The position numbers and the translations under genes are program-made. A stretch of DNA of 64,000 nucleotides. Origin: Macrostomum hystrix. Lineage: Eukaryota; Animalia; Platyhelminthes. The notes beneath the pieces were generated by a model, which saw nothing but the letters and a program-made list of their open reading frames with translations, ran no database searches and was not told the origin of the DNA. Below, in pieces: positions 5,635 to 62,200 of the stretch (its first letter is position 1; each line of letters begins with the position of its first letter). The stretch spans positions 3,100,001 through 3,164,000 of the forward strand of contig CATNEN010000001.1 in the NCBI GenBank assembly GCA_950097015.1. The letters are read 5' to 3'.

Positions 5635-8600
5635 TTACTCTTTCGGAAAGATGAGAGGCTTCTTCAATGTTGATTGGTAGCACGGTATTTGCTTATTGTC
5701 AGTCTCAACACTGACTGTAGAAGTCACCACAGGTAGCAGTTGAGTGAACTCGGGCGGAGCAGCACTGCCGTCATCGTAGGCTCCTAGAATCGACCTCTTC
5801 AGCGCCTGAATGAACACAGCGCCAGTCTGAATGTCTCTTTCAGACTTGTCCCCCTGAGTAACACTGTAGATATACAGCGAGTCCTCATTCAGGAGTGCAT
5901 TTTCTAGTCCGGGACATGCCGGCAGAATCATTTCGGCTGGGATGTGTCGACAAGCTTGAATAATGAAAACCTTCGGCTTGCCAAGGAGTGACGGATCCAA
6001 GCGAACTCTAGTAAACAACGTTTTCAGGCAAATTTTAGCAAGATCCGTTGAATACACAGAGTCAAATTCGCCGTGGGACATAATGCACAGTAGGAATGCT
6101 GCACATTCTTTATATTTGTCCCGTGTAAACTCGCCAGTCTCCGGAAGTCGGTGAAAAAAGTGTTCCGTCACATTTTCATACACTCTGTAGTCGAAGCCCA
6201 ATTTTTCCAAGCAGTCTGGCAAGCAGTCCTGGGCCGAGTCTCTCTCAGCTCCTAAGCGAGTCGGCTGTCGTCTGGGGTCATCAAAGTCTATGTTGTTAAT
6301 CACTATTGCTAAGCGAGTCAAACGATTGCCAACATCGTAGCGTATCTCTTGAGCGCCTTGCCCTCCATGAGCTGCACTGGAACCACCTTCATCGACTCCT
6401 GAACCGCCAGCTGAAGGCCCAGAAGATCCGCTGCGAGAATTTCCAGAACTATTGCCTCCAGCTGAACTGCCATGATCTTCTTGCGGCTCAGGAACGCTTT
6501 GGCTAGCAGATGTCTGATTGGCTAGCCTTCTGATGCTAAAAATAGAATGAAATTAGTAGATGACACTGCATAGTCTCATTAGAGAGTCAAGAGTGTTGCT
6601 AAAGGACGCAAATTTACACTGGAGTAGGGAGTCAAACCCCCGACCTTAAGGTCGTGAAGCGACGCTCGAACCAAAAGGCTACAAGAGGTAAATAGGAGAC
6701 GCGATTTTCAGTAAAGAGAGACAGACCTATAGACAGGCAATCTGGTCAGACAGTCATTCTGTCAGTCTGACAACAACAGTCCTGACACCAATGTTAATGT
6801 TGGGTAGGTTCACGGTCTCAATATTTTCTCTCCTAAATTTATTTTTGTGCTCACACTCACTACTCTTAACAATACAATTTTTACTCTCCCTAATTGCAAA
6901 TTCGTATTAACAAAGAATAATATTATATAGTATATTATATACTAGCGGCGTGAGCACACCATAACAAAAGTGTGTGATATTTAAACTCACCAATCTCTGA
7001 TGAAATCCGCGCACTCAAAATGCTTGCCGCATTCCGCCCACTGCAAGCAGGTGCGCCTGTACTCCCCGACAATTTCCCACTTCTGCAAGCTATCAATCTT
7101 CTTGCTCAGAACTCTCAGCACTTCCAGTTGGCCATTTCTAGCCGCCCAGATGAGCGGCGTATTGCCAAAGCGGTCAGCGTGGTCTGCGTTGCAGCCGGCA
7201 CGCAGCAAAACTTCAGCAACGCCTGCGAAGCCGCACTTTGACGCGTGAGTCAAAGCCGTGCAGAGCAGTCGATCCTACGAGGTAATGTTCACAAATATAA
7301 TTAAGTTACACTTGCTACGGAGTATTATGTCTTCGTAACTTCAAATGGGCGCTCTCTCAAAGCCAAGTTTTTTAACTTGAAATAAAAAAACGTTGAATTA
7401 CAAACGCTCGTATACAAGACTTCACAAACTCGAAATGTAATTAGACGTTGAGAACTTTCTGGTTCATGAAACTTTGACGATATGAAATTTCGGGCTTGTG
7501 AAACGTCCCTTTCAAATGAGTCCAAACTCACCTGAAGATTATAATCGGCGTTCATTTCAAGCAAAGCCACAGCCACGTCGACGTGTCCGCTCTGTGCCGC
7601 AAGCATCAACGGTGTCTGCTTCATGTTGTCAGGTCTGTTTACTTCGAGCGAAAGATTTTCAGTGGAAATATTTTCACAAATGACCTTCACAACTTTCAGG
7701 TGGCCTTGTAGGCTAGCCCAGGAGAGAGCTGACCTGCCAAGGACGTCACAAATGGTACTCGAATTCGGTTGCTTTTTCATCAGCTCTGCTACCAGGTCGG
7801 TTCTGTTTTTCTTGGCTGAGAGGATAAGTAGCGTCTCCTTCGCTGGTGGCAGCTGCTTGCATAGATCTCTTGAGATCTTCACATTACTCTCAAGCTCCTC
7901 ATTGGTCCATTGGTCTGGGTACCTGGGAAATTAATGAACATTTCAAGTGAAATTTTAGTGCAGTCGAGCTTAACTACAATCTTGAAGAGACAGGGTTCTG
8001 ATTACCGATTGACGTATTTTAGTAAACCGCAAGTTTTGGAAATACATCACTTACCTTTCTTTGGGTACAAATAAGAACTCGCTGGCAAAGATCTCTTTGA
8101 GTCTCTCTCTGAGCTGCTTAATTGTCTCGCGGTCTCTAGTGTCGTAAGCGAAGCGATTTTTATTCACGATGGCTTCCATTTTGGCTAAACAGAACTGTAC
8201 TTGCTTTCCAGAGTTGCTGTAGTGACACACTGTGGTCAGCTCTTCAAAGTCTGGGTCTTCTTGCAGCTGCTCAAACCACGAGTCGGTATCTTTAACTCTC
8301 AAGAGTTCTGCTTGGAGACTCCAAGATAGGCAGCAAAAGTTCACAAGAAGATAAAAGTCACCTGTAATAGACTTTCTGACAACAAGCAACTTCCTGGTGA
8401 ATTCAGGCATGAACGAAAAGTCTGAATGATTCCGATTCAATGGGAAACAAAATCTCCAAGCCCAGTCTGAGTTCACTGGACTTTCAAAAATTCTTTCCAT
8501 GAGCTTGATTTGGCGCGGCTCCCAACTTCTCATCACCCTGTGGTGAGAGAGTGGCCCGAGCACTTCTGTTGCCCTTGAATGGTTTCCGTTTTTCAAGTGC

Positions 8601-11600
8601 ACCAAAGCAGTCATACAGAGAATTGTGGTTCTGCTCCACGACTGGTTCTCAAAGTCGTTAAGGAATTTCAGTTCAGCATCCATGTTGTCTTTTGAGGTCC
8701 CCAACTTCTCGATGCAGTCAAAGACGGCTTGGAAAAGCTGGCCGCACTTGGAACTTGGCCGCACTGTGTCCAGGGCTAGAAGCGGAATCAGTGTGAATGG
8801 GTGAAAGTGAAAGCTTTTCACCTGGAGCGGTTGCAGTTCAAGTTTCAGCTTATTCGCCAGTATATCGACCAAATTTCTTCTGAGCTGCATGAGTCGGTCT
8901 CGAACTCGCGACTTCGTGTGCTGAAAGTCACCGCCGATGCCTGCGTTGCTGATGTACAGCTGGCAATCAGGCAACAAAAAGCTTGGCATACAAATGTCAG
9001 GGCTATCTTCGGAGTCAAGAAACTCGGCCATCTTGTCTAGCGACTGTTTTAGCAGCTGAACCAAATTCTCTGGCCTCCACACATTTTCATTCGTTAGTCC
9101 ATGGTCGTTGATAATAAAGAACAGCAAAGTTTTTGCGTGGTAGGTCTTGAGACCCGATGTAGCCACTTGACTTGACAGAATCTTTTTGAAAATGAACTTT
9201 ATCAATACGAAGAGCTGGCCTTGGCAGTCATTGAGCGATCTCATTATTTGCTTTTCTAAAAGGCTGGTGCTTAACCTGAGCTCTCTGTCATGGCTGGGTC
9301 TGGCTGCTCTGACCAAGTGCAGCTGCGGTATCTCCTCACCAGAGAGACCAGTTAGTTGGTGGCGCTGATTGGTCAGGTAGTTGCTGCAGCATTGAAAAGC
9401 CAAGCAGGCGCTCTCCGATGGTCTAGCACCGAGGGCGTCCAGTCGAAAAGCTGCCTCGCTTCCTGCAATGAGAATCAGGTTTCCTAAAAAAAATTCTAAA
9501 ATGGCAGCTTTTTGTAATTACGAGATATATCCCTACTCCATTGCAAAACATTCAAATAACAAACTAAAAGCTAAATACTTTTCAAAAACGGGGTGAGAAG
9601 CAGAGCAGTCTTGAGAGACAGCATCTCACAGAAAGGTTCCTGAGCTCGAATCCGCGTCGAGGCCACAGTCATTTTGGGCGCAGCCGCGGAGAGAAGGCTT
9701 GGGGGCTTGTCGTGCAATTCAAGGCACAGTTAGAGTGTAACTCTGCCTGACGATGGGAAAGTTAGGGCAGATGTACACACAAATGTGAGTGTGTGCTCAG
9801 GTGGCAGAAGAATGAGCAGAATCGACTCCTCGCTGACTGCAGGTCTATGCTGTCACCAAATGATTTTCAAGTGCCAACAGCCGTCCCGCAAATATGAATA
9901 TTTTTTTATTTTTTTATTACCTATCAAACAATCAACTTGGGCGTGACCCTCTTTAACTTCAAGCTTTTGAAGGCCAATTGCTGCACAGTTGCAGGAGCGA
10001 AGCAAGTGAATCGGCTTGCGATCCTGAGCGAATACAGTCCAGTCGATATTGGACTCTTCTGAAATATTTCCTTGCACTCTTTCCAGGCTGCAGCCCCAGC
10101 CTTCAGCGTAGCTACCAATCACGTGAATATCTTTCTTTGTTATACACCTTGAGAGCTGCTCTGTGAAGTCCGCCATCTTCAGGTGCAAGCTAATCCTTTT
10201 TTTGGTGAAGCCGGCCAGGTTTAACATCTTGTGTAGCTTTAAACTATCGGCTTCGTCATTTGACTGAGGGCTGAAAAGTTTAAAATTATAAACTAGTAGA
10301 AACCAGCGAAAGTACATTCAGTGTTTTTATTGTTACATTTACTAAGCTTATTGCAGCATAGGGGATGAGGGGCGGTGCGGTTAACGCGTCTGCCTCTCGC
10401 ACCACGGTCGCTGAGCCCGATTTCGCGGTGAGGCCGCATTAAATTTTTGCGCAGCCGCGGAGAGAAGGCTTGGGGGACTTGTCGTGCAATTTTACGCCCT
10501 TGATGGCAAATCTCCGAGGCACAGGGAAGTGTACACTGCCTGACGATGAGAAAGTCAGGGCAGACGTACACACCTGTGTGAGCGAATGTCTGCGCACGGT
10601 CCCACTGTGCGTGTTAGCTCAGGAGTCAGCGAAATGGGCACAATTGCCTTCTCGCTGACTGCAGGTCTAGTGTCACCAAATGATTTGCCATTGCCCGCAG
10701 TGCTGCTGCAATTGCTTACGCATTTCTCAAGAGATCAGTTAGGGCAGTGTTGCTCCTGAAGCTAAGACTTGATCTGAAATGGAATTTTACGAAAAATAAA
10801 GGTAATAAGAAACACATAAGGCATGATGCATGACCTTGGTTTCGCGTCTTACTGATCAATCAATCGCAGAATCTGAAATCTTCCGTGCATCTCCGCCAGT
10901 TGGACGCATGTGAGACCGTCTTTATCGATCTGTTGCGCGTTCGCTGCGTTGTCCAACAGCACTTTTGCCGCCCTCACGTGACCAGCGATGCAGGCCCTAG
11001 CAAGCGCTGCTCTGCCTTCATTGTCCACTTCGCTAACTGAGCACCTTTTTTGCAGGAGCAGCTCAATGAGACTGTGAGCACCGACATCAGCAGCCAGCAT
11101 CAGCGGTGTGTTGCCTGTTTCATCTCGATTGTCAATCATATCGATTTTCTGAAGCAACATTTCGGCTGCCCCGACATCGCCTTTTGTTATGGCGTACCTC
11201 AGAATTTGAAGCAAAGTTTCAGTTGCATTTGACCTAGAAATCTTTTCAATTAGATTTGGATGGCTAAGGAGTCTGATTCTATTACGCAGCTGAATAGTAC
11301 CGACAGCTAATTGTTGCTGCGCATTATCTGGTACTTGTTCTGACTCTTGCTGCGCATTATCTGGTACTTGTTCTGACTCTTGCTGCGCATTATCTGGTAC
11401 TTGTTCTGTCACTTGCTGCACATTATCTGGCACTTGTTCTGTCACTTGCTGCGCATTATCTGGTACTTGTTCTGACTCTTGCTGCGCATTATCTGGCACT
11501 TGTTCTGTCACTTGCTGCGCATTATCTGGTACTTGTTCTGTCACTTGCTGCGCATTATCTGGCACTTGTTCTGGCTCTTGCTGCTCATTATCTGGTACTT

Positions 11601-14600
11601 GTTCTGTCACTTGCTGCGCATTATCTGGTACTTGTTCTGACTCTTGCTGCGCATTATCTGGTACTTGTTCTGTCTCTTGCTGCGCATTATCTGGTACTTG
11701 TTCTGACTCTTGCTGCGCATTATCTGGTACTTGTTCTGTCTCTTGCTGCGCATTATCTGGCACTTGTTCTGGCTCTTGCTGCTCATTATCTGGTACTTGT
11801 TCTGTCACTTGCTGCGCATTATCTGGTACTTGTTCTGACTCTTGCTGCGCATTATCTGGCACTTGTTCTGTCACTTGCTGTGCATTATCTGGCACTTGTT
11901 CTGTCTCTTGCTGCGCATTATCTGGTACTTGTTCTGTCACTTGCTGCGCATTTTCTGGCACTTGTTCTGTCACTTGCTGCGCATTATCTGGCACTTGTTC
12001 TGTCACTTGCTGCTCATTATCTGGCACTTGCTCTGTCACTTGCTGCGCATTATCTGGTACTTGTTCTGTCACTTGCTGCGCATTTTCTGGTACTTGTTCT
12101 GTCACTTGCTGCGCATTATCTGGCTCTTGTTCTGTCACTTGCTGCGCATTATCTGGTACTTGTTCTGTCACTTGCTGCGCATTATCTGGCACTTGTTCTG
12201 TCACTTGCTGCGCATTTTCTGGTACTGGTTCTGACTCTTGCTGCGCATTATCTGGCTCTTGTTCTGTCACTTGCTGCGCATTATCTGGCTCTTGTTCTGT
12301 CACTTGCTGCTCATTATCTGGCACTTGTTCTGTCACTTGCTGCGCATTATCTGGCTCTTGTTCTGTCACTTGCTGCTCATTATCTGGCACTTGTTCTGTC
12401 ACTTGCTGCTCATTATCTGGCACTTGTTCTGTCACTTGCTGCTCATTATCTGGCACTTGTTCTGTCACTTGCTGCTCATTATCTGGCACTTGTTCTGTCA
12501 CTTGCTGCGCATTATCTGGCACTTGTTCTGTCACTTGCTGCTCATTATCTGGCACTTGTTCTGTCACTTGCTGCGCATTATCTGGCACTTGTTCTGTCAC
12601 TTGCTGCTCATTATCTGGCACTTGTTCTGTCACTTGCTGCTCATTATCTGGCACTTGTTCTGTCACTTGCTGCTCATTATCTGGTACTTGTTCTGACTCT
12701 TGCTGCTCATTATCTGGCACTTGTTCTGTCTCTTGCTGCTTATTATCTGGCACTTGTTCTGTCACTTGCTGTGCATTATCTGGCACTCTTTCTGTCACTT
12801 GCTGCGCATTATCTGGTACTTGTTCTGACTCTTTCTGCGGATTATCTGGCACTTGTTCTGTCTCTTGCTGCTCATTATCTGGTACTTGTTCTGTCACTTG
12901 CTGCTCATTATCTGGCACTTGTTCTGTCACTTGCTGCGCATTATCTGGCACTCTTTCTGTCACTTGCTGCGCATTATCTGGTACTTGTTCTGACTCTTTC
13001 TGCGGATTATCTGGCACTTGTTCTGTCTCTTGCTGCTCATTATCTGGTACTTGTTCTGTCACTTGCTGCTCATTATCTGGCACTTGTTCTGTCACTTGCT
13101 GCTCATTATCTGGTACTTGTTCTGTCACTTGCTGTGCATTATCTGGCACTCTTTCTGTCACTTGCTGCGCATTATCTGGTACTTGTTCTGTCACTTGCTG
13201 CGCATTATCTGGCACTTGTTCTGTCTCTTGCTGCGCATTATCTGGCACTTGTTCTGTCACTTGCTGCGCATTATCTGGCACTTGTTCTGTCACTTGCTGC
13301 GCATTTTCTGGTACTTGTTCTGTCACTTGCTGCGCATTATCTGGTACTTGTTCTGTCACTTGCTGTGTATTATCTGGCACTTGTTCTGTCACTTGCTGCG
13401 CATTATCTGGTACTTGTTCTGTCACTTGCTGCGCATTATCTGGTACTTGTTCTGACTCTTGCTGTGCATTATCTGGTACTTGTTCTGTCACTTGCTGCGC
13501 ATTATCTGGTACTTGTTCTGACTCTTGCTTCGCATTATCTGGCACTTGTTCTGTCACTTGCTGCGCATTATCTGGCACTTGTTCTGACTCTTGCTGCGCA
13601 TTATCTGGTACTTGTTCTGTCACTTGCTGCGCATTATCTGGCACTTGTTCTGTCACTTGCTGCGCATTATCTGGTACTTGTTCTGACTCTTGCTGCGCAT
13701 TATCTGGCACTTGTTCTGTCACTTGCTGCGCATTATCTGGTACTTGTTCTGACTCTTGCTGCTCATTATCTGGCACTTGTTCTGTCACTTGCTGCTCATT
13801 ATCTGGCTCTTGTTCTGTCACTTGCTGCTCATTATCTGGCACTTGTTCTGTCTCTTGCTGCGCATAATCTGGCACTTGTTCTGTCACTTGCTGCGCATTA
13901 TCTGGCACTTGTTCTGTCATTTGCTGCTCATTATCTGGCTCTTGTTCTGTCACTTGCTGCGCATTATCTGGCACTTGTTCTGTCACTTGCTGCTCATTAT
14001 CTGGCTCTTGTTCTGTCATTTGCTGCTCATTATCTGGCACTTGTTCTGTCACTTGCTGCGCATTATCTGGCACTTGTTCTGTCTCTTGCTGCGCATTGTC
14101 TGGCACTTGTTCTGTCACTTGCTGCGTATTATCTGGTACTTGTTCTGACTCTTGCTGCTCATTATCTGGCACTTGTTCTGTCACTTGCTGCTCATTATCT
14201 GGCTCTTGTTCTGTCACTTGCTGCTCATTATCTGGTACTTGTTCTGTCTCTTGCTGCGCATTATCTGGCACTTGTTCTGTCACTTGCTGCGCATTATCTG
14301 GCTCTTGTTCTGTCATTTGCTGCTCATTATCTGGCACTTGCTCTGTCACTTGCTGCGCATTATCTGGCACTTGTTCTGTCTCTTGCTGCGCATTATCTGG
14401 CACTTGTTCTGTCACTTGCTGCGCATTATCTGGTACTTGTTCTGACTCTTGCTGCTCATTATCTGGCACTTGTTCTGTCACTTGCTGCTCATTATCTGGC
14501 TCTTGTTCTGTCACTTGCTGCGCATTTTCTGGCACTTGTTCTGTCCCTTGCTGCTCATTATCTGGCACTTGTTCTGTCTCTTGCTGCGCATAATCTGGCA

Positions 14601-15351
14601 CTTGTTCTGTCACTTGCTGCGCATTATCTGGCTCTTGTTCTGTCATTTGCTGCTCATTATCTGGCACTTGTTCTGTCACTTGCTGCGCATAATCTGGCAC
14701 TTGTTCTGTCACTTGCTGCGCATTATCTGGCTCTTGTTCTGTCATTTGCTGCTCATTATCTGGCACTTGTTCTGTCTCTTGCTGCGCATTATCTGGCACT
14801 TGTTCTGTCTCTTGCTGCGCATTATCTGGCACTTGTTCTGTCACTTGCTGCGCATTATCTGGCACTTGTTCTGTCTCTTGCTGCGCATTATCTGTCACTT
14901 GTTCTGTCCCTTGCTGCGCATTATCTGGCACTTGTTCTGTCTCTTGCTGCGCATTATCTGGTACTTGTTCTGTCTCTTGCTGCGCATTATCTGTCACTTG
15001 TTCTGTCACTTGCTGCGCATTTTTTTCGGCATGACTTTGTGTCACTTTGCTTTGCAGAGGTTTGATTTCTGCACCGTTTGGATCGTCATTTCTGAGGCAA
15101 GTTAGATAAAGAATGTATAAGTTAAAGACAATATCTGTTGGTTTTAGTTTTTCAATGTAAATTGCTGGGGAATGAATGGAATACGAGGAGACATTGCTTT
15201 CTGATGCGCCTTGTTTTGATGATTCAATTGGGATTAATGAATTGGAATCTTGCAAACGGTCTGTTGATTTTGTACCTGACCGACTCGCTTGTGATTCGTA
15301 CAAGTATTCATTCGTTATTTTCCGTAAATTGCAACTTTTGATCGAAGACAT
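5635..15351 (-). CDS. Paralogue B: 11-aa repeat + ankyrin + Mab-21/cGAS-like NTase + ankyrin + caspase fusion (~2610 aa); exons 15351-10853, 10270-9921, 9462-8055, 7922-7532, 7274-6991, 6535-5635
   Basis: All five introns are GT-AG with matching phases (2,1,2,0,2). Exons total 7833 nt, divisible by 3. Motifs: ankyrin (GNTPLMLAA, QTPLMLAAQSGH, GNTPLIWAARNG); NTase (IGSYAEGWG...SNIDW); Mab-21 C-lobe (LRLSTSLLEK, LKTYHAKT, MPSFLLP); caspase (AIVINN, RLGAERD, IMSHGE, KPKVFIIQACRH). The 5' end and a possible extra small intron in exon 1 are uncertain. Confidence 0.85.
6593..6685 (-). mobile_element. 5' fragment of SINE family A in the last intron (duplicated at 20566-20658)
   Basis: Reverse complement matches the tRNA head through CCTTTAGCAA. 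Confidence 0.65.
7415..7510. mobile_element. Degraded relative of the 805-1043 MITE (duplicated at ~21388-21482)
   Basis: TTCACAAACTCGAAAT...TGAAATTTCGGGCTTGTGAAACGTCCC matches the MITE TIRs. Confidence 0.5.
9590..9870 (+). mobile_element. tRNA-derived SINE family B (duplicated at ~23569-23835)
   Basis: B-box-like GAGCTCGAATCC; shared blocks GCGCAGCCGCGGAGAGAAGGCTTGGGGG, CTGCCTGACGATG...AGGGCAGATGTACACAC and TGTCACCAAATGA with the copies at 10.4 and 54.6 kb. Confidence 0.7.
10361..10690 (+). mobile_element. tRNA-derived SINE family B with two strong internal hairpins (duplicated at ~24349-24675)
   Basis: tRNA-like head GGCGGTGCGGTTAACGCGTCTGCCTCTC...GAGCCCGATTTC; hairpins at 10529-10571 and 10624-10660. 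Confidence 0.7.
11312..15020 (-). repeat. Coding 33-bp tandem repeat, ~112 units of EQVPDN(A/E)QQ(VT/ES/ET)
   Basis: Uninterrupted within ORF 10849..15447. Confidence 0.95.
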
Positions 15352-18590: not shown

Positions 18591-19607
18591 CGCTGAAAAT
18601 TTGCACCCTTGTAAAAGCACAGAATTCTGTGTACTACTAAATAAATTAATCCAAGCAGTTTAGGAACTGCTGTTGACAATATTTTCGGATATGAAAACTT
18701 TAAGAGGACAAACCGAAAGTAGTTCGTGACGTATAATTTTACGAGTTATTTTTCAAAATAACAAGGAACAGTATTTATTTGATATTGTTTTTAAACACGA
18801 GTAACTTTTTTCACTAAATAAGTTTTTTTTGGTCTGCATATCATTCTCCTCATATTAAGCAAAATGCTTTAGTTTTTACCTTTTGTTTTAACGCTTTACC
18901 TAAGGCACAAGGGTACAAATTGAATTTTAAAAAACAAGTGAGAAATACATGCAATTAGCATTGATTAAAAAAAAGCTCACAAATTTCAGTCCAGCACTAT
19001 TTAATGCATTAGCTTGATAAAGTATTGTTGCTTCAAGAGTATCGGTCAAATTACAATATAATATGCGCACATTCATTTAAAATGGCTGGAAAACGATAAG
19101 CTAAAATATAATCATTTAGATACGTCTTTGACGTTAGTCTGAGTGACAGTATTTGGAAGCTACGCTTGTAAGTTCTTAAAATTTCCCCTTCCCTTAAAGC
19201 TAAATCTCACAACGGTAGAAACACCACGTGGAGCATTTTAATTGATTTTTTTTCCGTTATCCGTTGGATAATTGATTTAATAGTCAATTATTCTATTAGT
19301 AAACCAAAAAGGATTTGCCATAGAGGTTTGTACGGAGCAATGTTAGTGGTCCTTGTCGACAGGGTCTCCTACAATGATCGCTAAACATCTCATCGATGCT
19401 TTGAAGGTTCATTCATCGTCAAGGGCTGAAAACTTTGATCTATATAATGCACTCTCACGAAAATTGGTTTGGCTATCGTGAAAAAGGCAGTGGGTATGTG
19501 AAACACCCACGTGGTCGTTATTTACCCAGGGGGAGAGTAACTTTTTACTGTTATTGTAATTGTACTAACTCATTTCGTCGCTTTCTGCAATCTGTTAGCT
19601 AGGCGTC

Positions 19608-22600
19608 TTACTCTTTCGGAAAGATGAGAGGCTTCTTCAATGTTGATTGGTAGCACGGTATTTGCTTATTGTCAGTCTCTACACTGACTGTAGAAGTCAC
19701 CACAGGTAGCAGTTGAGTGAACTCGGGCGGAGCAGCACTGCCGTCATCGTAGGCTCCTAGAATCGACCTCTTCAGCGCCTGAATGAACACAGCGCCAGTC
19801 TGAATGTCTCTTTCAGACTTGTCACCCTGAGTAACACTGTAGATATACAGCGAGTCCTCATTCAGGAGTGCATTTTCTAGTCCGGGACATGCCGGCAGAA
19901 TCATTTCGGCTGGGATGTGTCGACAAGCTTGAATAATGAAAACCTTCGGCTTGCCAAGGAGTGACGGATCCAAGCGAACTCTAGTAAACAACGTTTTCAG
20001 GCAAATTTTAGCAAGATCCGTTGAATACACAGAGTCAAATTCGCCGTGGGACATAATGCACAGTAGGAATGCTGCACATTCTTTATATTTGTCCCGTGTA
20101 AACTCGCCAGTCTCCGGAAGTCGGTGAAAAAAGTGTTCCGTCACATTTTCATACACTCTGTAGTCGAAGCCCAATTTTTCCAAGCAGTCTGGCAAGCAGT
20201 CCTGGGCCGAGTCTCTCTCAGCTCCTAAGCGAGTCGGCTGTCGTCTGGGGTCATCAAAGTCTATGTTGTTAATCACTATTGCTAAGCGAGTCAAACGATT
20301 GCCAACATCGTAGCGTATCTCTTGAGCGCCTTGCCCTCCATGAGCTGCACTGGAACCACCTTCATCGACTCCTGAACCGCCAGCTGAAGGCCCAGAAGAT
20401 CCGCTGCGAGAATTTCCAGAACTATTGCCTCCAGCTGAACTGCCATGATCTTCTTGCGGCTCAGGAACGCTTTGGCTAGCAGATGTCTGATTGGCTAGCC
20501 TTCTGATGCTAAAAATAGAATGAAATTAGTAGATGACACTGCATAGTCTCATTAGAGAGTCAAGAGTGTTGCTAAAGGACGCAAATTTACACTGGAGTAG
20601 GGAATCAAACCCCCGACCTTAAGGTCGTGAAGCGACGCTCGAACCAAAAGGCTACAAGAGGTAAATAGGAGACGCGATTTTCAGTAAAGAGAGACAGACC
20701 TATAGACAGGCAATCTGGTCAGACAGTCATTCTGTCAGTCTGACAACAACAGTCCTGACACCAATGTTAATGTTGGGTAGGTTCACGGTCTCAATATTTT
20801 CTCTCCTAAATTTATTTTTGTGCTCACACTCACTACTCTTAACAATACAATTTTTACTCTCCCTAATGGCAAATTCTTATTAACAAATAATATTATTATA
20901 TAGTATATTATATACTAGCGGCGTGAGCACACCATAACAAAAGTGTGTGATATTTAAACTCACCAATCTCTGATGAAATCCGCGCACTCAAAATGCTTGC
21001 CGCATTCCGCCCACTGCAAGCAGGTGCGCCTGTACTCCCCGACAATTTCCCACTCCTGCAAGCTATCAATCTTCTTGCTCAGAACTCTCAGCACTTCCAG
21101 TTGGCCATTTCTAGCCGCCCAGATGAGCGGCGTATTGCCAAAGCGGTCAGCGTGGTCTGCGTTGCAGCCGGCACGCAGCAAAACTTCAGCAACGCCTGCG
21201 AAGCCGCATTTTGACGCGTGAGTCAAAGCCGTGCAGAGCAGTCGATCCTACGAGGTAATGTTCACAAATATAATTAAGTTACACTTGCTACGGAGTATTA
21301 CGTCTTCGTAACTTCAAATGGGCGCTCTCTCAAAGCCAAGTTTTTTAACTTGAAATAAAAAACGTTGAATTACAAACGCTGGTATACAAGACTTCACAAA
21401 CTCGAAATGTAATTAGACGTTGAGAACTTTCTGGTTCATGAAACTTTGACGATATGAAATTTCGGGCTTGTGAAACGTCCCTTTCAAATGAGTCCAAACT
21501 CACCTGAAGATTATAATCGGCGTTCATTTCAAGCAAAGCCACAGCCACGTCGACGTGTCCGCTCTGTGCCGCAAGCATCAACGGTGTCTGCTTCATGTTG
21601 TCAGGTCTGTTTACTTCGAGCGAAAGATTTTCAGTGGAAATATTTTCACAAATGACCTTCACAACTTTCAGGTGGCCTTGTAGGCTAGCCCAGGAGAGAG
21701 CTGACCTGCCAAGGACGTCACAAATGGTACTCGAATTCGGTTGCTTTTTCATCAGCTCTGCTACCAGGTCGGTTCTGTTTTTCTTGGCTGAGAGGATAAG
21801 TAGCGTCTCCTTCGCTGGTGGCAGCTGCTTGCATAGATCTCTTGAGATCTTCACATTACTCTCAAGCTCCTCATTGGTCCATTGGTCTGGGTACCTGGGA
21901 AATTAATAAACATTTCAAGTGAAATTTTAGTGCAGTCGAGCTTAACTACAATCTTGAAGAGACAGGGTTCTGATTACCGATTGACGTATTTTAGTAAACC
22001 GCAAGTTTTGGAAATACATCACTTACCTTTCTTTGGGTACAAATAAGAACTCGCTGGCAAAGATCTCTTTGAGTCTCTCTCTGAGCTGCTTAATTGTTTC
22101 GCGGTCTCTAGTGTCGTACGCGAAGCGATTTTTATTCACGATGGCTTCCATTTTGGCTAAACAGAACTGTACTTGCTTTCCAGAGTTGCTGTAGTGACAC
22201 ACTGTGGTCAGCTCTTCAAAGTCTGGGTCTTCTTGCAGCTGCTCAAACCACGAGTCGGTATCTTTAACTCTCAAGAGTTCTGCTTGGAGACTCCAAGATA
22301 GGCAGCAAAAGTTCACAAGAAGATAAAAGTCACCTGTAATAGACTTTCTGACAACAAGCAACTTCCTGGTGAATTCAGGCATGAACGAAAAGTCTGAATG
22401 ATTCCGATTCAATGGGAAACAAAATCTCCAAGCCCAGTCTGAGTTCACTGGACTTTCAAAAATTCTTTCCATGAGCTTGATTTGGCGCGGCTCCCAACTT
22501 CTCATCACCCTGTGGTGAGAGAGTGGCCCGAGCACTTCTGTTGCCCTTGAAAGGTTTCCGTTTTTCAAGTGCACCAAAGCAGTCATACAGAGAATTGTGG

Positions 22601-25600
22601 TTCTGCTCCACGACTGGTTCTCAAAGTCGTTAAGGAATTTCAGTTCAGCATCCATGTTGTCTTTTGAGGTCCCCAACTTCTCGATGCAGTCAAAGACGGC
22701 TTGGAAAAGCTGGCCGCACTTGGAACTTGGCCGCACTGTGTCCAGGGCTAGAAGCGGAATCAGTGTGAATGGGTGAAAGTGAAAGCTTTTCACCTGGAGC
22801 GGTTGCAGTTCAAGTTTCAGCTTATTCGCCAGTATATCGACCAAATTTCTTCTGAGCTGCATGAGTCGGTCTCGAACTCGCGACTTCGTGTGCTGAAAGT
22901 CACCGCCGATGCCTGCGTTGCTGAAGTACAGCTGGCAATCAGGCAACAAAAAGCTTGGCATACAAATGTCAGGGCTATCTTCGGAGTCAAGAAACTCGGC
23001 CATCTTGTCTAGCGACTGTTTTAGCAGCTGAACCAAATTCTCTGGCCTCCACACATTTTCATTCGTTAGTCCATGGTCGTTGATAATAAAGAACAGCAAA
23101 GTTTTTGCGTGGTAGGTCTTGAGACCCGATGTAGCCACTTGACTTGACAGAATCTTTTTGAAAATGAACTTTATCAATACGAAGAGCTGGCCTTGGCAGT
23201 CATTGAGCGATCTCATTATTTGCTTTTCTAAAAGGCTGGTGCTTAACCTGAGCTCTCTGTCATGGCTGGGTCTGGCTGCTCTGACCAAGTGCAGCTGCGG
23301 TATCTCCTCACCAGAGAGACCAGTTAGTTGGTGGCGCTGATTGGTCAGGTAGTTGCTGCAGCATTGAAAAGCCAAGCAGGCGCTCTCCGATGGTCTAGCA
23401 CCGAGGGCGTCCAGTCGAAAAGCTGCCTCGCTTCCTGCAATGAGAATCAGGTTTCCTAAAAATATTTCTAAAATGGCAGCTTTTTGTAGCTCGTAATTAC
23501 GAGATATATCCCTACTTTATTGCAAAACATTCAAATAACAAACTAAAAGCTAAATACTTTTCAAAAACGGGGTGAGAAGCAGAGCAGTCTTGAGAGACAG
23601 CATCTCACAGAAAGGTTCCTGAGCTCGAATCCGCGTCGAGGCCACAGTCATTTTGGGCGCAGCCGCGGAGAGAAGGCTTGGGGGCTTGTCGTGCAATTCA
23701 AGGCACAGTTAGAGTGTAACTCTGCCTGACGATGGGAAAGTTAGGGCAGATGTGAGTGTGTGCTCAGGTGACAGAAGAATGAGCAGAATCGACTCCTCGC
23801 TGACTGCAGGTTTATGCTGTCACCAAATGATTTTTAAGTGCCAACAGCCGTCCCGCAAATATGAATATTTTTTTTTATTACCTATCAAACAATCAACTTG
23901 GGCGTGACCCTCTTTAACTTCAAGCTTTTGAAGGCCAATTGCTGCACAGTTGCAGGAGCGAAGCAAGTGAATCGGCTTGCGATCCTGAGCGAATACAGTC
24001 CAGTCGATATTGGACTCTTCTGAAATATTTCCTTGCACTCTTTCCAGGCTGCAGCCCCAGCCTTCAGCGTAGCTACCAATCACGTGAATATCTTTCTTTG
24101 TTATACACCTTGAGAGCTGCTCTGTGAAGTCCGCCATCTTCAGGTGCAAGCTAATCCTTTTTTTGGTGAAGCCGGCCAGGTTTAACATCTTGTGTAGCTT
24201 TAAACTATCGGCTTCGTCATTTGACTGAGGGCTGAAAAGTTTAAAAGTATAAACTAGTAGAAACCAGCGAAAGTATATTCAGTGTTTTTATTATTAAATT
24301 TGGCACTTTCTGGCACTTTATTAAATTTACTAAGCTTATTGCAGCATAGGGGGTCAGGGGCGGTGCGGTTAACGCGTCTGCCTCTCGCACCACGGTCGCT
24401 GAGCCCGATTTCGCGGTGAGGCCGCATTAAATTTTTGCGCAGCCGCGGAGAGAAGGCTTGGGGGACTTGTCGTGCAATTATACGCCCTTGATGGCAAATC
24501 TCCGAGGCACAGGGAAGTGTACACTGCCTGACGATGAGAAAGTCAGGGCAGACGTACACACCTGTGTGAGCGAATGTCTGCGCACGGTACCACTGTGCGT
24601 GTTAGCTCAGGAGTCAGCGAAATGGGCACAATTGCCTTCTCGCTGACTGCAGGTCTAGTGTCACCAAATGATTTGCCACTGCCCGCAGTGCTGCTGCAAT
24701 TGCTTACGCATTTCTCAAGAGATCAGTTAGGGCAGTGTTGCTCCTGAAGCTAAGACTTGATCTGAAATGGAATTTTACGAAATTAATAAAGGCAATAAGA
24801 AACACATAAGGCATGATGCATGACCTTGGTTTCGCGTCTTACTGATCAATCAATCGCAGAATCTGAAATCTTCCGTGCATCTCCGCCAGTTGGACGCATG
24901 TGAGACCGTCTTTATCGATCTGTTGCGCGTTCGCTGCGTTGTCCAACAGCACTTTTGCTGCCCTCACGTGACCAGCGATGCAGGCCCTAGCAAGCGCTGC
25001 TCTGCCTTCATTGTCAACTTCGCTAACTGAGCACCTTTTTTGCAGGAGCAGCTCAATGAGACTGTGAGCACCGACATCAGCAGCCAGCATCAGCGGTGTG
25101 TTGCCTGTTTCATCTCGATTGTCAATCATATCGATTTTCTGAAGCAACATTTCGGCTGCCCCGACATCGCCTTTTGTTATGGCGTACCTCAGAATTTGAA
25201 GCAAAGTTTCAGTTGCATTTGACCTAGAAATCTTTTCAATTAGATTTGGATGGCTAAGGAGTCTGATTCTATTACGCAGCTGAATAGTACCGACAGCTAA
25301 TTGTTGCTGCGCATTATCTGGCACTTGTTCTGACTCTTGCTGCGCATTATCTGGTACTTGTTCTGACTCTTGCTGCGCATTATCTGGTACTTGTTCTGGC
25401 TCTTGCTGCGCATTATCTGGCACTTGTTCTGACTCTTGCTGCGCATTATCTGGCTCTTGTTCTGTCACTAGCTGCGCATTATCTGGCACTTGTTCTGACT
25501 CTTGCTGCGCATTATCTGGTACTTGTTCTGACTCTTGCTGCGCATTATCTGGCACTTGTTCTGACTCTTGCTGCGCATTATCTGGTACTTGTTCTGTCAC

Positions 25601-28600
25601 TTGCTGCGCATTATCTGGCACTTGTTCTGTCACTTGCTGCGCATTATCTGGTACTTGTTCTGTCACTTGCTGCTCATTATCTGGTACTTGTTCTGACTCT
25701 TGCTGCGCATTATCTGGTACTTGTTCTGTCACTTGCTGCGCATTATCTGGTACTTGTTCTGTCACTTGCTGCGCATTATCTGGCACTTGTTCTGACTCTT
25801 GCTGCGCATTATCTGGCACTTGTTCTGACTCTTGCTGCGCATTATCTGGCACTTGTTCTGTCACTAGCTGCGCATTATCTGGCACTTGTTCTGTCACTTG
25901 CTGCGCATTATCTGGCACTTGTTCTGACTCTTGCTGCGCATTATCTGGCACTTGTTCTGTCACTTGCTGCGCATTATCTGGCACTTGTTCTGTCACTTGC
26001 TGCGCATTATCTGGCTCTTGTTCTGTCACTTGCTGCGCATTATCTGGCACTTGTTCTGGCTCTTGCTGCGCATTATCTGGTACTTGTTCTGTCACTTGCT
26101 GCGCATTATCTGGCACTTGTTCTGTCACTTGCTGCGCATTATCTGGTACTTGTTCTGTCACTTGCTGCGCATTATCTGGCACTTGTTCTGTCACTTGCTG
26201 CGCATTATCTGGCACTTGTTCTGTCACTTGCTGCGCATTATCTGGCACTTGTTCTGTCACTTGCTGCGCATTATCTGGTACTTGTTCTGACTCTTGCTGA
26301 GCATTATCTGGTACTTGTTCTGTCACTTGCTGCGCATTATCTGGTACTTGTTCTGTCACTTGCTGAGCATTATCTGGCACTTGTTCTGTCACTTGCTGTG
26401 TATTATCTGGCACTTGTTCTGTCACTTTCTGCGCATTATCTGGTACTTGTTCTGTCACTTGTTGCTCATTATCTGGCACTTGTTCTGTCACTTGCTGCGC
26501 ATTATCTGGTACTTGTTCTTTCACTTGCTGCACATTATCTGGTACTTGTTCTGTCACTTGCTGCGCATTATCTGGTACTTGTTCTGTCACTTGCTGCGCA
26601 TTATCTGGCACTTGTTCTGACTCTTGCTGCGCATTATCTGGCACTTGTTCTGTCACTTGCTGCGCATTATCTGGCACTTGTTCTGTCACTTGCTGCGCAT
26701 TATCTGGTACTTGTTCTGTCACTTGCTGCGCATTATCTGGCACTTGATTTGTCACTTGCTGCACATTATCTGGTACTTGTTCTGTCACTTGCTGCGCATT
26801 ATCTGGCACTTGTTCTGACTCTTTCTGCGCATTATCTGGCACTTGTTCTGGCTCTTGCTGCGCATTATCTGGTACTTGTTCTGTCACTTGCTGAGCATTA
26901 TCTGGCACTTGTTCTGTCACTTGCTGTGTATTATCTGGCACTTGTTCTGTCACTTTCTGCGCATTATCTGGTACTTGTTCTGTCACTTGTTGCTCATTAT
27001 CTGGCACTTGTTCTGTCACTTGCTGCGCATTATCTGGTACTTGTTCTTTCACTTGCTGCACATTATCTGGTACTTGTTCTGTCACTTGCTGCGCATTATC
27101 TGGTACTTGTTCTGTCACTTGCTGCGCATTATCTGGCACTTGTTCTGACTCTTGCTGCGCATTATCTGGCACTTGTTCTGTCACTTGCTGCGCATTATCT
27201 GGCACTTGTTCTGTCACTTGCTGCGCATTATCTGGTACTTGTTCTGTCACTTGCTGCGCATTATCTGGCACTTGATTTGTCACTTGCTGCACATTATCTG
27301 GTACTTGTTCTGTCACTTGCTGCGCATTATCTGGCACTTGTTCTGACTCTTTCTGCGCATTATCTGGCACTTGTTCTGGCTCTTGCTGCGCATTATCTGG
27401 TACTTGTTCTGTCACTTGCTGAGCATTATCTGGCACTTGTTCTGTCACTTGCTGTGTATTATCTGGCACTTGTTCTGTCACTTTCTGCGCATTATCTGGT
27501 ACTTGTTCTGTCACTTGTTGCTCATTATCTGGCACTTGTTCTGTCACTTGCTGCGCATTATCTGGTACTTGTTCTTTCACTTGCTGCACATTATCTGGTA
27601 CTTGTTCTGTCACTTGTTGCTCATTATCTGGCACTTGTTCTGTCACTTGCTGCGCATTATCTGGTACTTGTTCTGTCACTTGCTGCGCATTATCTGGCAC
27701 TTGTTCTGACTCTTGCTGCGCATTATCTGGCACTTGTTCTGTCACTTGCTGCGCATTATCTGGCACTTGTTCTGTCACTTGCTGCGCATTATCTGGTACT
27801 TGTTCTGTCACTTGCTGCGCATTATCTGGCACTTGATTTGTCACTTGCTGCACATTATCTGGTACTTGTTCTGTCACTTGCTGCGCATTATCTGGCACTT
27901 GTTCTGGCTCTTGCTGCGCATTATCTGGTACTTGTTCTGTCATTTGCTGCGCATTATCTGGTACTTGTTCTTTCACTTGCTGCACATTATCTGGTACTTG
28001 TTCTGTCACTTGCTGCGCATTATCTGGTACTTGTTCTGTCACTTGCTGCGCATTATCTGGTACTTGTTCTGTCACTTGCTGAGCATTATCTGGTACTTGT
28101 TCTGTCACTTGCTGCGCATTATCTGGCACTTGTTCTGTCACTTGCTGCGCATTATCTGGTACTTGTTCTGTCACTTGCTGCGCATTATCTGGCACTTGTT
28201 CTGACTCTTGCTGCGCATTATCTGGTACTTGTTCTGTCACTTGCTGCGCATTATCTGGTACTTGTTCTGGCTCTTGCTGCGCATTATCTGGCACTTGTTC
28301 TGACTCTTGCTGCGCATTATCTGGTACTTGTTCTGTCACTTGCTGCACATTATCTGGCACTTGTTCTGCCACTTGCTGCGCATTATCTGGTACTTGTTCT
28401 GGCTCTTGCTGCGCATTATCTGGCACTTGTTCTGACTCTTGCTGCGCATTATCTGGCACTTGTTCTGTCACTTGCTGCGCATTATCTGGCACTTGTTCTG
28501 ACTCTTGCTGCGCATTATCTGGCACTTGTTCTGACTCTTGCTGCGCATTATCTGGCACTTTTCTTGTCAGTTTGTCTTCTGTGACTTGAGATCCTTTTTC

Positions 28601-28933
28601 GTGTTGCTTTTGCTCATCTTCTGGCTGGGTCTCATCAGGTAGCTGCTGCTGCTGCTCATTCTGTTTATCTACGCGTTGTATCTCTTCTCGTTGCTTTACG
28701 AGCTCTTTGTCACTTTTCAAAGGACTTTCTTTGCTTTTTAATTGCCGGCATCCTTGTCGGTCTTCAAATTGTGCAAGTACAATGTTTTCAAGGTCAATGC
28801 TGATGTAACTTTCTAATTCCAATAGTTGTTTTCTGTTGGTCTTGCATTCAACGGTGTTTGAGGGCGATTTCTCCACGCCCATGCCTTGGATCTCTAGAAA
28901 GTACATAAATAGATAGAGTACTTGTGACATCAT
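19608..28933 (-). CDS. Paralogue A: 11-aa repeat + ankyrin + Mab-21/cGAS-like NTase + ankyrin + caspase fusion (~2470 aa); exons ~28933-24843, 24231-23882, 23434-22027, 21894-21504, 21247-20964, 20508-19608
   Basis: Same splice sites and phases as copy B. Exons 2-6 differ by only a few substitutions (I/F, H/L, K/E). The N-terminus is unrelated to B and C. True start is uncertain (possible acceptor TTTCTAG near 28896, Met at 28882). Confidence 0.85.
25302..28560 (-). repeat. Coding 33-bp tandem repeat, ~99 units, with a 16-17-unit higher-order block
   Basis: Uninterrupted within ORF 24839..28933. Identical variant patterns recur at 528- and 561-bp spacing. Confidence 0.95.
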
Positions 28934-62177: not shown

Positions 62178-62200
62178 GTCTGGCTTGTGCGAAATTTTGC

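Follow-up and report, generated by a model that had tools for sequence, protein, structure and literature searches.

The minus strand of the 64,000-nucleotide stretch of the Macrostomum hystrix genome analyzed here (hereafter, the window) carries, in tandem, separate open reading frames for ankyrin repeats (ANK), a Mab-21-like domain and a caspase. The locus raises the question of whether these frames are the exons of one gene and, if so, how a protein that joins the fold of cGAS-like receptors (cGLRs) to a caspase would operate. To our knowledge, cGLRs signal only via diffusible nucleotides, and caspases are recruited via death-fold adaptors. The original prediction, made from the sequence of the window, held that the frames belong to a single gene in the order repeat, ANK, Mab-21/cGLR fold, ANK and caspase, and that a cGLR module controls the caspase directly, bypassing STING and adaptors, as an all-in-one innate immune sensor and executioner.

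For copy 1, the first part of the question has a direct answer (Table 1). A single spliced contig of approximately 4 kb, with no mismatches to copy 1, is present separately in three public runs (X2, X3 and X4) and links the ANK exon, the nucleotidyltransferase (NTase)-like exons, the ANK exons, the caspase exon and the 3′ UTR in the blocks 5600-6535, 6991-7273, 7531-7919, 8052-9461, 9920-10270, 54 nt and 10853-11331. All of the stretches that it skips read CT..AC on the forward strand, that is, GT..AG on the gene strand, and with frames checked by hand on the sequence, copy 1 has six introns, all GT-AG and all in frame. Five junctions had been expected, an in-frame 54-nt microexon having been overlooked; the two proposed for verification, 8055/7922 and 6991/6535, are both exact in the spliced contigs. 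These contigs, which are assemblies of reads rather than single molecules, reach 170 nt past 5600, placing the end of the 3′ UTR at about 5430, and stop at the other end at 11331, 18 nt inside the 33-nt repeat; the runs carry no RNA label, their RNA nature being deduced from the spliced contigs. The fusion is one expressed gene, in which ANK to caspase lie on one spliced RNA (copy 1), the separate minus-strand frames are its exons, and the transcript encodes the domains in the predicted order.

Table 1. Coordinates of the fusion genes in the window (position 1 is its first nucleotide).
Feature	Position	Strand	Remarks
Copy 1, whole gene	5635-15447	-	In tandem with copy 2
Copy 1 exon 1	10853-15447	-	ORF of 1532 aa; frame open from 15447, first ATG at 15351
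Copy 1 exon 1, unique N-terminal part	15022-15447	-	
Copy 1 coding minisatellite, 33-nt unit, 112.4 copies	11314-15021	-	TRF: period 33, 92% matches, 0% indels
Copy 1 exon 1, unique stretch and ankyrin repeats	10853-11313	-	ANK Pfam matches in 10852-11400
Copy 1 exon 1, splice donor GT	10852-10851	-	
Copy 1 exon 2, 54-nt microexon	10720-10773	-	18 codons in frame; joints 10270 to 10720 and 10773 to 10853 in X2, X3 and X4
Copy 1 exon 3, N-lobe of NTase-like domain	9921-10270	-	Translation, family alignment, RNA contig
G-S motif, copy 1 exon 3	10116-10111	-	Translation
Degenerate metal-binding motif N-I-D, copy 1 exon 3	10050-10042	-	D-I-D in unfused relatives
Copy 1 exon 4, rest of NTase core, Mab-21_C helical domain and further helical C-terminal region	8055-9462	-	
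Copy 1 exon 5, ankyrin repeats	7532-7922	-	Ank_2 1.6e-22; RNA contig and joints
Copy 1 exon 6, ankyrin repeats	6991-7274	-	Ank_2 5.1e-11; RNA contig and joints
Copy 1 exon 7, linker and caspase	5635-6535	-	Gly/Ser-rich linker 6322-6534; caspase domain 5638-6321; stop 5637-5635
Catalytic His codon (SHG), copy 1	6075-6073	-	
Catalytic Cys codon (QACRH), copy 1	5952-5950	-	
Copy 2, whole gene	19608-28933	-	Exons, frames and splice sites all as in copy 1
Copy 2 exon 1, different unique N-terminal part, repeat and ANK	24843-28933	-	ORF of 1364 aa; alignment to copy 1
Copy 2 33-nt repeat, 99 copies	25304-28569	-	TRF
Copy 2 exon 2	24708-24761	-	Frame and GT..AG introns as in copy 1
Copy 2 exon 3	23882-24231	-	As above
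Copy 2 exon 4	22027-23434	-	As above
Copy 2 exon 5	21504-21894	-	As above
Copy 2 exon 6	20964-21247	-	As above
Copy 2 exon 7	19608-20508	-	As above
Paralogue 3, approximately 50% identical	1-2604	-	Rest to the left of the window; ORFs and genome search matches
Paralogue 3 exon 1, ANK, without repeat	1531-2604	-	

The expectation that the junctions are in frame in both copies was also borne out, as copy 2 is free of stops and keeps the six GT..AG pairs. Exons 3-7 of the two copies differ at 8 of 3321 coding nucleotides (three amino acid changes, no stops) and the introns at 24 of 1811 aligned nucleotides (1.3%), an exon conservation about five times that of the introns; in the 54-nt exon 2 and its flanks, the two copies do not differ. 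Repeat number (112 versus 99) and 5′ ends are unlike. In copy 1, the repeat frame is open throughout and continuous with the unique flanks on both sides, and its predicted product is an acidic, Gln-rich 11-aa unit (QQVTEQVPDNA-like) iterated over approximately 1235 aa, with a pI of 4.05. The NTase exon of paralogue 3 extends to window position ~359, and its remaining exons, the caspase exon among them, are located immediately to the left of the window (contig positions 3094837-3098225); a fourth fusion locus of the same architecture (L002) is found elsewhere on the same contig.

Pfam and sequence searches of the window gene were run exon by exon, and the expected Pfam assignments emerged unevenly. 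ANK matches are clear, in three copy 1 exons, as is that of Peptidase_C14; Mab-21_C (PF20266) barely clears its cut-off in exon 4 (24.5-24.6 bits versus 24.1, a small margin), and exon 3 alone has no Pfam match. The Mab-21 NTase domain PF03281 was matched neither by exon 3 nor by the full M. lignano proteins at E-values up to 10. By sequence, exon 4 shares 44-51% identity with M. lignano proteins, and a profile of the family finds cGLR1 (2.7e-5) and cGAS (3e-4) in the PDB. Because the domain is split across exons in the window, the fold was tested on P0006, a contiguous M. lignano homologue from the fused clade that is approximately 50% identical to the window exons. Its predicted model (pLDDT 84, pTM 0.83) has human cGAS as the top Foldseek matches (1e-8, probability 1.0, ~390 columns) and aligns in VIA-align with Cv-cGLR1 at Z 19.2 (271 aligned residues, rmsd 3.7), with mouse cGAS and Sp-cGLR1 at 17.2 each, and with MB21D2, MAB21L1 and MiD49 at 16.8, 16.5 and 15.3, respectively. 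Fold searches with the full 1099-aa model of another fused protein, P0011, were dominated by caspase and ANK matches. As modeled on P0006, the middle domain has the cGAS/cGLR fold, with a bilobal NTase core and Mab-21_C, and its earlier assignment to Mab-21/cGLR agrees with this model and with the narrow Mab-21_C match.

Fusions of cGLRs with ANK, TPR and death domains have been described, with ANK-cGLRs in M. lignano and corals, and the word “caspase” is absent from the searched portions of the supplement tables of that study (Li et al., 2023; PMC9980059). The window gene resembles ANK-cGLRs in having ANK N-terminal of the NTase and in its large lineage-specific expansion, and it resembles cGAS, Cv-cGLR1, Sp-cGLR1 and Tc-cGLR in its predicted bilobal NTase and Mab-21_C fold (Z 17-19, homologue model) and its G-S motif. 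Unlike known cGLRs, the window fusions have a broken DxD, a C-terminal caspase and an extra helical region after Mab-21_C.

The state of the metal-binding site bears most directly on what this domain could do. Active cGLRs combine G[S/G] with an intact [D/E]h[D/E]...[D/E] triad; in the window gene, with the triad mapped by motif position and predicted strand/secondary structure, the G-S motif is present and the dyad is degenerate. Copies 1 and 2 have NID in place of DxD, paralogue 3 (S-D-I-N) and L002 have DIN, and the fused M. lignano models have DMN (P0011, P0159) or DIN (P0171, P0017), such that an intact DxD is absent from all eight caspase-fused members found (four M. hystrix loci and four gene models of M. 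lignano). Unfused members, by contrast, keep DID in 58 of the 69 motif matches among the M. lignano-dominated matches and at every one of the 23 readable close loci of the M. hystrix genome. At the third metal position, where unfused relatives have a conserved Asp, copies 1 and 2 (RPSESAC) carry Glu, as does the clade-A model P0011, and L002 carries Thr. Exchange of Asp for Asn at one metal ligand usually abolishes NTase activity, which is no proof of loss, and nucleotide binding may persist after loss of chemistry, MAB21L1 and MiD51 being nucleotide binders. The middle domain of the caspase-fused members is probably not an enzyme; a pseudo-NTase sensor therefore fits this pattern better than a nucleotide-signaling cGLR, and the cGLR module of the original prediction is to be recast accordingly. 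The proposed bypass of STING may hold, in which case it would do so since no nucleotide is made at all. A search of the genome for STING gave one sub-threshold STING_LBD match (25.6 bits versus a cut-off of 27), in an ORF without a Pfam match.

The opposite end of the protein holds the caspase, and a conserved RYD|VGN just before that domain is a candidate self-cleavage site. Exon 7 of copy 1 matches Peptidase_C14 (PF00656) at 9.6e-30 over positions 1-232 of 233, has a short intersubunit linker, and ends its active-site motif in His (QACRH) instead of the Gly of QACRG. A PDB sequence search finds caspase-3/6/7 at 1e-17, and the Arg, Gln and Arg of the P1-Asp pocket, presumably corresponding to caspase-3 R64, Q161 and R207, are all aligned by phmmer to caspase-3a and caspase-6. 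In the P0011 model, the caspase part matches caspase-9, -3 and -8, Dronc and CED-3 at Z 19-20. The caspase is also predicted to homodimerize via its last (C-terminal) beta strand (residues 191-222 of 228), with a score of 0.53 versus 0.21 for the best control, runs that share at least 50% of contacts and a partner pLDDT of at least 76; among proteins of solved structure, the pass mark is reached by 21 of 30 homodimers and by none of 23 single chains, although the predictor may have been guided by the existing structures of caspase dimers. No CARD or DED was matched by Pfam in any window exon or in the fused M. lignano models P0011, P0017 and P0171, which, with the His and Cys present in SHG and QACRH, upholds the description of a caspase devoid of these recruitment domains. 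Judged by these residues, the exon encodes a canonical Asp-specific caspase that is catalytically equipped.

The comparison with caspase-8, caspase-9, Dronc and CED-3 extends from fold, His/Cys dyad, P1 Asp pocket and predicted beta6 homodimer to the long non-catalytic N-terminal region, which could mediate clustering as in initiator caspases. Unlike theirs, the “pro-domain” of the window gene consists of a sensor-type fold and ANK, so that a single chain would unite sensor, adaptor and protease; the protease is also nearest to caspase-3/6/7 by sequence and lacks CARD/DED.

The fusions stand out against a large background. At least 146 NTase exon matches to the parent family occur in the 220-Mb genome, many in tandem clusters (at least 91 in another exon search), and caspase exons adjoin family NTase exons at only four loci. 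The nearest public relatives of the window gene are all from Macrostomum lignano, in which four gene models held by NCBI/UniProt, unnamed and uncharacterized, have the fused architecture (including PAA59752.1, PAA80948.1 and PAA93319.1). A search with the ANK and caspase half of P0011 matched mostly generic ankyrin proteins and added the M. lignano fusion P0171; it also returned P0249, an unrelated ANK-caspase protein. The fusions fall in two orthologous clades, each joining M. lignano and M. hystrix. Copy 1 and paralogue 3 differ at pN 0.21-0.36 and pS 0.6-0.86, with dS saturated and no dN/dS obtained for two exons. The caspase fusions are a small, conserved and apparently old subset, kept in a second species, of a very large family whose tandem clustering and fast divergence would suit a repertoire of innate-immune receptors; an immune function is suggested only by this family-level pattern. 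The earlier statement that no functional description was known agrees with the literature searched, where no description of a Mab-21/cGLR-caspase fusion was found (an absence that is no proof), while the architecture itself already existed in databases as the M. lignano models.

How might such a protein work? We give an even chance to the view that it is a lineage-specific flatworm single-chain protein whose dead cGAS-fold module triggers the tethered caspase by induced proximity, with no nucleotide signal. Having lost its nucleotidyltransferase chemistry, the cGAS-fold domain would act as a ligand-binding or oligomerizing receptor module, as the catalytically dead MiD49/51 are adaptors; ligand-driven clustering, aided by the ANK repeats, would bring together the caspase domains, each preceded in the chain by a flexible Gly/Ser linker; and these would dimerize via the beta6 interface customary for caspases and thereby be switched on, much as CARD/DED platforms activate initiator caspases. 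The resulting proteolysis would lead to cell death or signaling without second messenger, STING or adaptor. We infer this mechanism from the architecture, with ligand, oligomerization and protease activity all putative. A more specific version, which we hold to be plausible but somewhat short of even, is a single-chain sensor-executioner in which the dead cGLR fold senses a pathogen or danger ligand, clusters and switches on its own caspase, the arrangement dating from before the two species diverged and persisting in two orthologous lineages, with the NTase site lost in step with the fusion.

Precedents exist for parts of this scheme. MAB21L1, MB21D2 and MiD49/MiD51 have the same fold (Z 15.3-16.8, homologue model) with an incomplete catalytic site and have established or presumed functions as adaptors or receptors, not as enzymes; unlike the window gene, they have no protease or effector domain and no ANK flank, and their roles lie in mitochondrial fission and development. 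Bacterial conflict systems include NTase or NLR-like proteins with caspase-like or CHAT proteases, and CBASS and related sensor-protease systems follow a like logic, in which a death effector is coupled to a sensor of NTase fold; E. coli CdnC matches the homologue model distantly (Z 13.6). CBASS, however, uses separate proteins and a diffusible nucleotide, whereas the window gene has a covalent link, an NTase site that looks dead and an animal caspase.

An apoptotic initiator of development or homeostasis, a macrostomid “ANK caspase” whose ANK and Mab-21 fold would serve only as a recruitment pro-domain without pathogen sensing, is a reading that we consider unlikely. Parasitic flatworms have ANK-prodomain caspases, with DED caspases and FADD lost, and a M. 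lignano caspase with an unusual pro-domain is sister to them (Krasovec et al., 2024; PMC11463336). The ankyrin repeats of exons 5-6, immediately upstream of the caspase, recall these proteins, and MAB21L proteins have developmental roles (PMC9980059); nevertheless, platyhelminth ANK caspases are reported only from parasitic flatworms and without a Mab-21 domain (PMC11463336). Furthermore, a protein-atlas search and a caspase-exon search limited by length to stand-alone-sized proteins found only generic caspase-3/6/7/8-like relatives, at approximately 30% identity in the latter, and no kinship to the parasitic-flatworm ANK caspases, which the length window may hide. A Mab-21-fold family that is hugely expanded, tandem and fast-evolving is typical of immune receptors rather than core apoptosis genes, and the recent tandem duplication with variable repeat number also argues against this reading.

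It is quite improbable that the domain is an active cGLR that responds to nucleic acid by making a nucleotide signal, through which the fused caspase would be activated in cis or on neighboring molecules in place of STING. The fold and the G-S motif are kept, the site retains one of its two Asp and, in third place, an acidic Glu, and the unfused relatives appear catalytically intact. M. lignano ANK-cGLRs were among those listed and screened by Li et al. (2023; PMC9980059). Against this, one Asp of DxD is lost, at either position, in all fused members of two species, and Pfam finds no SAVED, STING or CARF nucleotide-sensor domain beside the caspase. We also know of no animal precedent for a cyclic-nucleotide-regulated caspase, which further weighs against such a scheme.

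Very improbable, likewise, is that the fusions are regulators or decoys, either baits that pair with active unfused relatives or guarded targets that free the caspase upon disturbance by a pathogen (integrated-decoy logic). A dead site where the rest of the family looks active, with many paralogues on hand for hetero-oligomers, would suit this logic; an inert decoy is nevertheless disfavored because purifying selection keeps all the catalytic and P1 residues of the caspase, which such a decoy would not need.

That neighboring ANK, Mab-21 and caspase genes were merely joined by transcript assembly, or haplotypes assembled as tandem copies, is scarcely credible: although the contigs are assemblies from runs without an RNA label and the exons of the two copies are nearly identical, every junction is an exact in-frame GT..AG, the domains follow one another without intergenic sequence, stop codon or a further start, the same contig recurs in three runs, the M. 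lignano models independently show the same order, as does the fourth locus, and the copies are unlike in introns, repeat number and 5′ ends.

A natural protein that covalently ties a cGLR fold to a caspase would be new, the more so as the sensor fold appears to have lost its chemistry in precisely the fused lineages. The function of the fusions is open to testing, as RNAi works in Macrostomum and the protein can be expressed. Flatworms, reported to be without most cGLRs, are in the Macrostomum lineage very rich in cGLR-like sequences. If the induced-proximity mechanism is true, the fused members would represent a new wiring of an innate-immune or cell-death switch in animals, a natural experiment on the passage from signaling enzyme to pure receptor, and a compact model of induced-proximity caspase activation.

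The ankyrin, Mab-21 and caspase reading frames that the original prediction assigned to one polypeptide are exons of a single minus-strand gene present in two tandem copies, as spliced contigs from public sequencing runs confirm for copy 1. When contigs of three runs from one study (X2, X3 and X4; about 45 Mb of contigs each) were aligned to 5600-11500, each run gave a single ~4 kb contig with zero mismatches to copy 1, in blocks at 5600-6535, 6991-7273, 7531-7919, 8052-9461, 9920-10270, 54 letters and 10853-11331; all skipped stretches read CT..AC on the plus strand, that is, GT..AG on the strand of the gene. Though the runs carry no RNA label, their content says that they are RNA, since the contigs are intron-less with canonical sense-strand splice sites, introns have almost no depth, and the share of sampled words present, 0.67, agrees with how much of the stretch we estimate to be exonic. 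Copy 1 is expressed, and because the contigs end 18 nt inside a 33-nt repeat, this repeat is transcribed as part of E1. All donors, acceptors and phases were inspected by hand (minus strand, 11000 to 5500), and junctions 8055/7922 and 6991/6535 match the contig joints exactly. The in-frame joining claimed earlier stands; the count of five junctions does not, as there are six introns and a microexon of 18 codons, in frame between the ANK and NTase exons, had been overlooked. The predicted exons of copy 2 are likewise all open, with six GT..AG pairs intact, and would join in frame.

Exons of the fusion gene and other features (window positions unless a locus is named)
Feature	Position	Strand	Content
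Copy 1	5635-15447	minus	multi-exon gene
Copy 2	19608-28933	minus	multi-exon gene
E1	?..10853	minus	N-terminal part, repeat, ANK
E2	10773-10720	minus	microexon, 54 nt
E3	10270-9921	minus	NTase N-lobe
E4	9462-8055	minus	NTase core, Mab-21_C, helical region
E5	7922-7532	minus	ANK
E6	7274-6991	minus	ANK
E7	6535-5635	minus	linker + caspase; UTR to about 5430
5' module, copy 1	15023-15791		upstream + first ~140 codons
5' module, paralogue 3	2181-2944		
Paralogue 3, first exon	1531-2604		
Paralogue 3, 3' ORF	L001 4831-5613	minus	last ANK exon + caspase domain
Intron 3 element	9540-9736		
Intron 2 element	10328-10721		related to intron 3 element
Minisatellite	3206-4751		
Minisatellite	16193-18588		20-nt unit x119
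Minisatellite	31405-32240		
Minisatellite	36685-37988		
Minisatellite	50546-51179		
ORF	44484-44888	minus	resembles C-terminal dimerisation region of hAT-type transposase (by eye)
ORF pair	61268-62252	plus	resembles Sec1/SLY1-family protein (by eye)
L002	G000:C1:9214001-9224000	plus	fourth fused locus
L004	G000:C2:9104529-9104996	minus	STING_LBD-like match

In self-comparison of the window, 5001-14578 and 18974-28568 are 96.5% identical. Across exons 3-7, 8 of 3321 coding nt differ (three amino-acid changes), exon 2 is identical, and 24 differences fall in the 1811 intron nt that align. The 33-nt unit of E1, repeated 112.4 times in copy 1 and 99 times in copy 2 with 0% indels, encodes an acidic, Gln-rich 11-aa repeat (about 1235 aa, pI 4.05). 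Copy 1 and paralogue 3, a third caspase-fused gene directly left of the window, have 5' modules of 97.9% identity; as the remainder shares only about 50% protein identity and the 5' end of copy 2 differs, sequence comparison suggests that promoter and first coding segment were recently exchanged or converted. Elsewhere, the elements in introns 3 and 2 of copy 1 match hundreds of contigs, with summed depths in the thousands and many loose ends, and look like a high-copy, transcribed interspersed repeat. The long minisatellites have strong strand skew and give long spurious ORFs in several frames.

Searched individually against Pfam, the exons gave a full-length Peptidase_C14 in E7 (9.6e-30), ankyrin repeats in the E1 tail, E5 and E6, and Mab-21_C in E4, barely above threshold (24.6 bits against 24.1); E3 had no Pfam match. 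The caspase exon aligned to caspase-3/6/7 (1e-17), was also caspase-3/7-like in a protein-atlas search, and retains SHG, QAC (as QACRH) and the P1-Asp-binding Arg, Gln and Arg. In paralogue 3 a single ORF holds both the last ANK exon and the caspase domain and lacks the Gly/Ser linker of copies 1 and 2, a junction that is either more compact or has lost an intron.

The strong relatives of E4 are all proteins of Macrostomum lignano, a free-living flatworm (44-51% identity). Among 269 collected proteins scanned, including the 158 relatives of E4 listed among 1.84 billion library representatives, a caspase is present in only four M. lignano gene models, which combine Mab-21_C, ANK and Peptidase_C14: PAA59752.1 (P0011, 1099 aa), PAA80948.1 (P0159, 1444 aa), PAA93319.1 (P0017, 2111 aa) and Mlig029339g1 (P0171, 1536 aa). 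Two other long M. lignano models join a Mab-21-like domain to WSC and RING (P0015) or to DSL/EGF repeats (P0041), and could be further fusions or chimeric models. In the window's own genome (220 Mb, 42 contigs, with the window at C1:3100001-3164000), at least 91 matches to the Mab-21 exon and at least 146 to the NTase exon were counted, often tandemly clustered. The caspase exon matched 19 times and adjoins the former at only four loci, namely copy 1, copy 2, paralogue 3 and L002, which lies 6 Mb away with the same exon order. Between its NTase and Mab-21 exons (~700-4850), L002 holds a minisatellite of ~4 kb, either intronic or coding, open in frame with the NTase exon, with a translated unit every ~29 aa by eye. 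STING_LBD had one genome match only, and that below threshold (L004, 25.6 bits against a cut-off of 27), in an ORF with no Pfam match.

As the window's middle domain is divided between E3 and E4, contiguous natural homologues were modelled, and the predicted Mab-21/cGLR assignment is borne out by the model of M. lignano P0006, a fused-clade fragment with ANK and NTase-like domain (pLDDT 84.1, pTM 0.83). This model matched human cGAS in Foldseek (1e-8, probability 1.0, about 390 columns) and, in VIA-align, Cv-cGLR1 (Z 19.2, 271 aligned residues, rmsd 3.7), mouse cGAS (17.2), Sp-cGLR1 (17.2), Tc-cGLR (16.9), MB21D2 (16.8), MAB21L1 (16.5), MiD49 (15.3) and CdnC (13.6). The family sequence profile likewise scored cGLR1 (2.7e-5) and cGAS (3e-4) better than MAB21L1 (0.16). 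In the model of the full fusion P0011 (pLDDT 78.7), the first ~570 residues form a confidently predicted domain, followed by seven ANK repeats (574-808), a Gly/Ser linker that is disordered (813-867) and a caspase resembling caspase-9, -3, -8, Dronc and CED-3 (Z 19-20).

A quick maximum-likelihood phylogeny of E4 yields two starred clades of fused members: P0011, P0159 and P0006 group with paralogue 3, copy 1 and copy 2, and P0017 with L002. Both are nested in a further starred clade that also holds unfused members. Each fused clade unites M. lignano with the window's genome, so the fusion, on this tree, predates the divergence of these species; one origin or two both fit. All exons compared between copy 1 and paralogue 3 show a pN of 0.21-0.36, with pS saturated at 0.6-0.86.

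At the catalytic site, family members share the consensus GS[YF]xEGWG ... DSDID, with DSDID on the second strand, and a conserved PAxD follows later in the sequence. Unfused members among the collected proteins, almost all from M. lignano, keep DID in 58 of 69 motif matches, as do all 23 readable loci among the 27 closest unfused ones in the window's genome. Copies 1 and 2 read S-N-I-D, paralogue 3 and L002 S-D-I-N, P0011 and P0159 D-M-N, and P0171 and P0017 D-I-N, so the dyad is broken in every caspase-fused member; the third acid position is Glu in copies 1, 2 and P0011 and Thr in L002. Since metal-ligand loss correlates with caspase fusion in both fused clades and both species, and the NTase-like domain itself is under purifying selection, the sequences point to a pseudo-enzyme retained because it binds or assembles.

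A single-chain sensor-protease is the best reading, one that we hold with about as much doubt as conviction. With ANK repeats on both sides, the dead cGAS-fold domain would bind a ligand or self-assemble; clustering would bring together caspase domains on a ~65-residue linker, which would dimerise and become active with no need of nucleotide, STING or adaptor. A homodimer prediction for the caspase domain passes, at 0.53 against 0.21 for the best control, although the predictor may have memorised caspase dimers that are already solved; its runs have at least 50% of contacts in common, with partner pLDDT of at least 76 and the interface on the final strand. Of 30 proteins solved as same-chain pairs 21 reached the mark, and of 23 solved as single chains none did. 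Directly before the caspase domain, this gene and P0011 share a conserved RYD|VGN, speculatively a candidate self-cleavage site. The rivals are an active cGLR signalling in cis, a non-immune initiator of the ANK-caspase type, a decoy or regulator, and an artefact; an immune role is suggested by a parent family that is very large, clustered and fast-evolving.

The components (cGLR/Mab-21 fold, ANK repeats and caspase) are each of a known kind. Li et al. (2023; PMC9980059) catalogued M. lignano ANK-cGLRs and screened part of that set; such ANK-cGLR fusions are already known (PMC9980059), as are flatworm ANK-caspases (PMC11463336). The gene described here has all three in the same chain. The original prediction knew of no functional description of this architecture, and our literature search found no paper on a cGLR/Mab-21-ANK-caspase single chain, but public databases already contain the combination, under no other names than 'hypothetical protein' or 'Caspase family p20 domain-containing protein'. 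Within the reach of these searches, the fusion is confined to one flatworm lineage. There the joining of sensor and caspase is genuine, conserved and expressed, with the surprise of a probable pseudo-enzyme, and its function is inferred.
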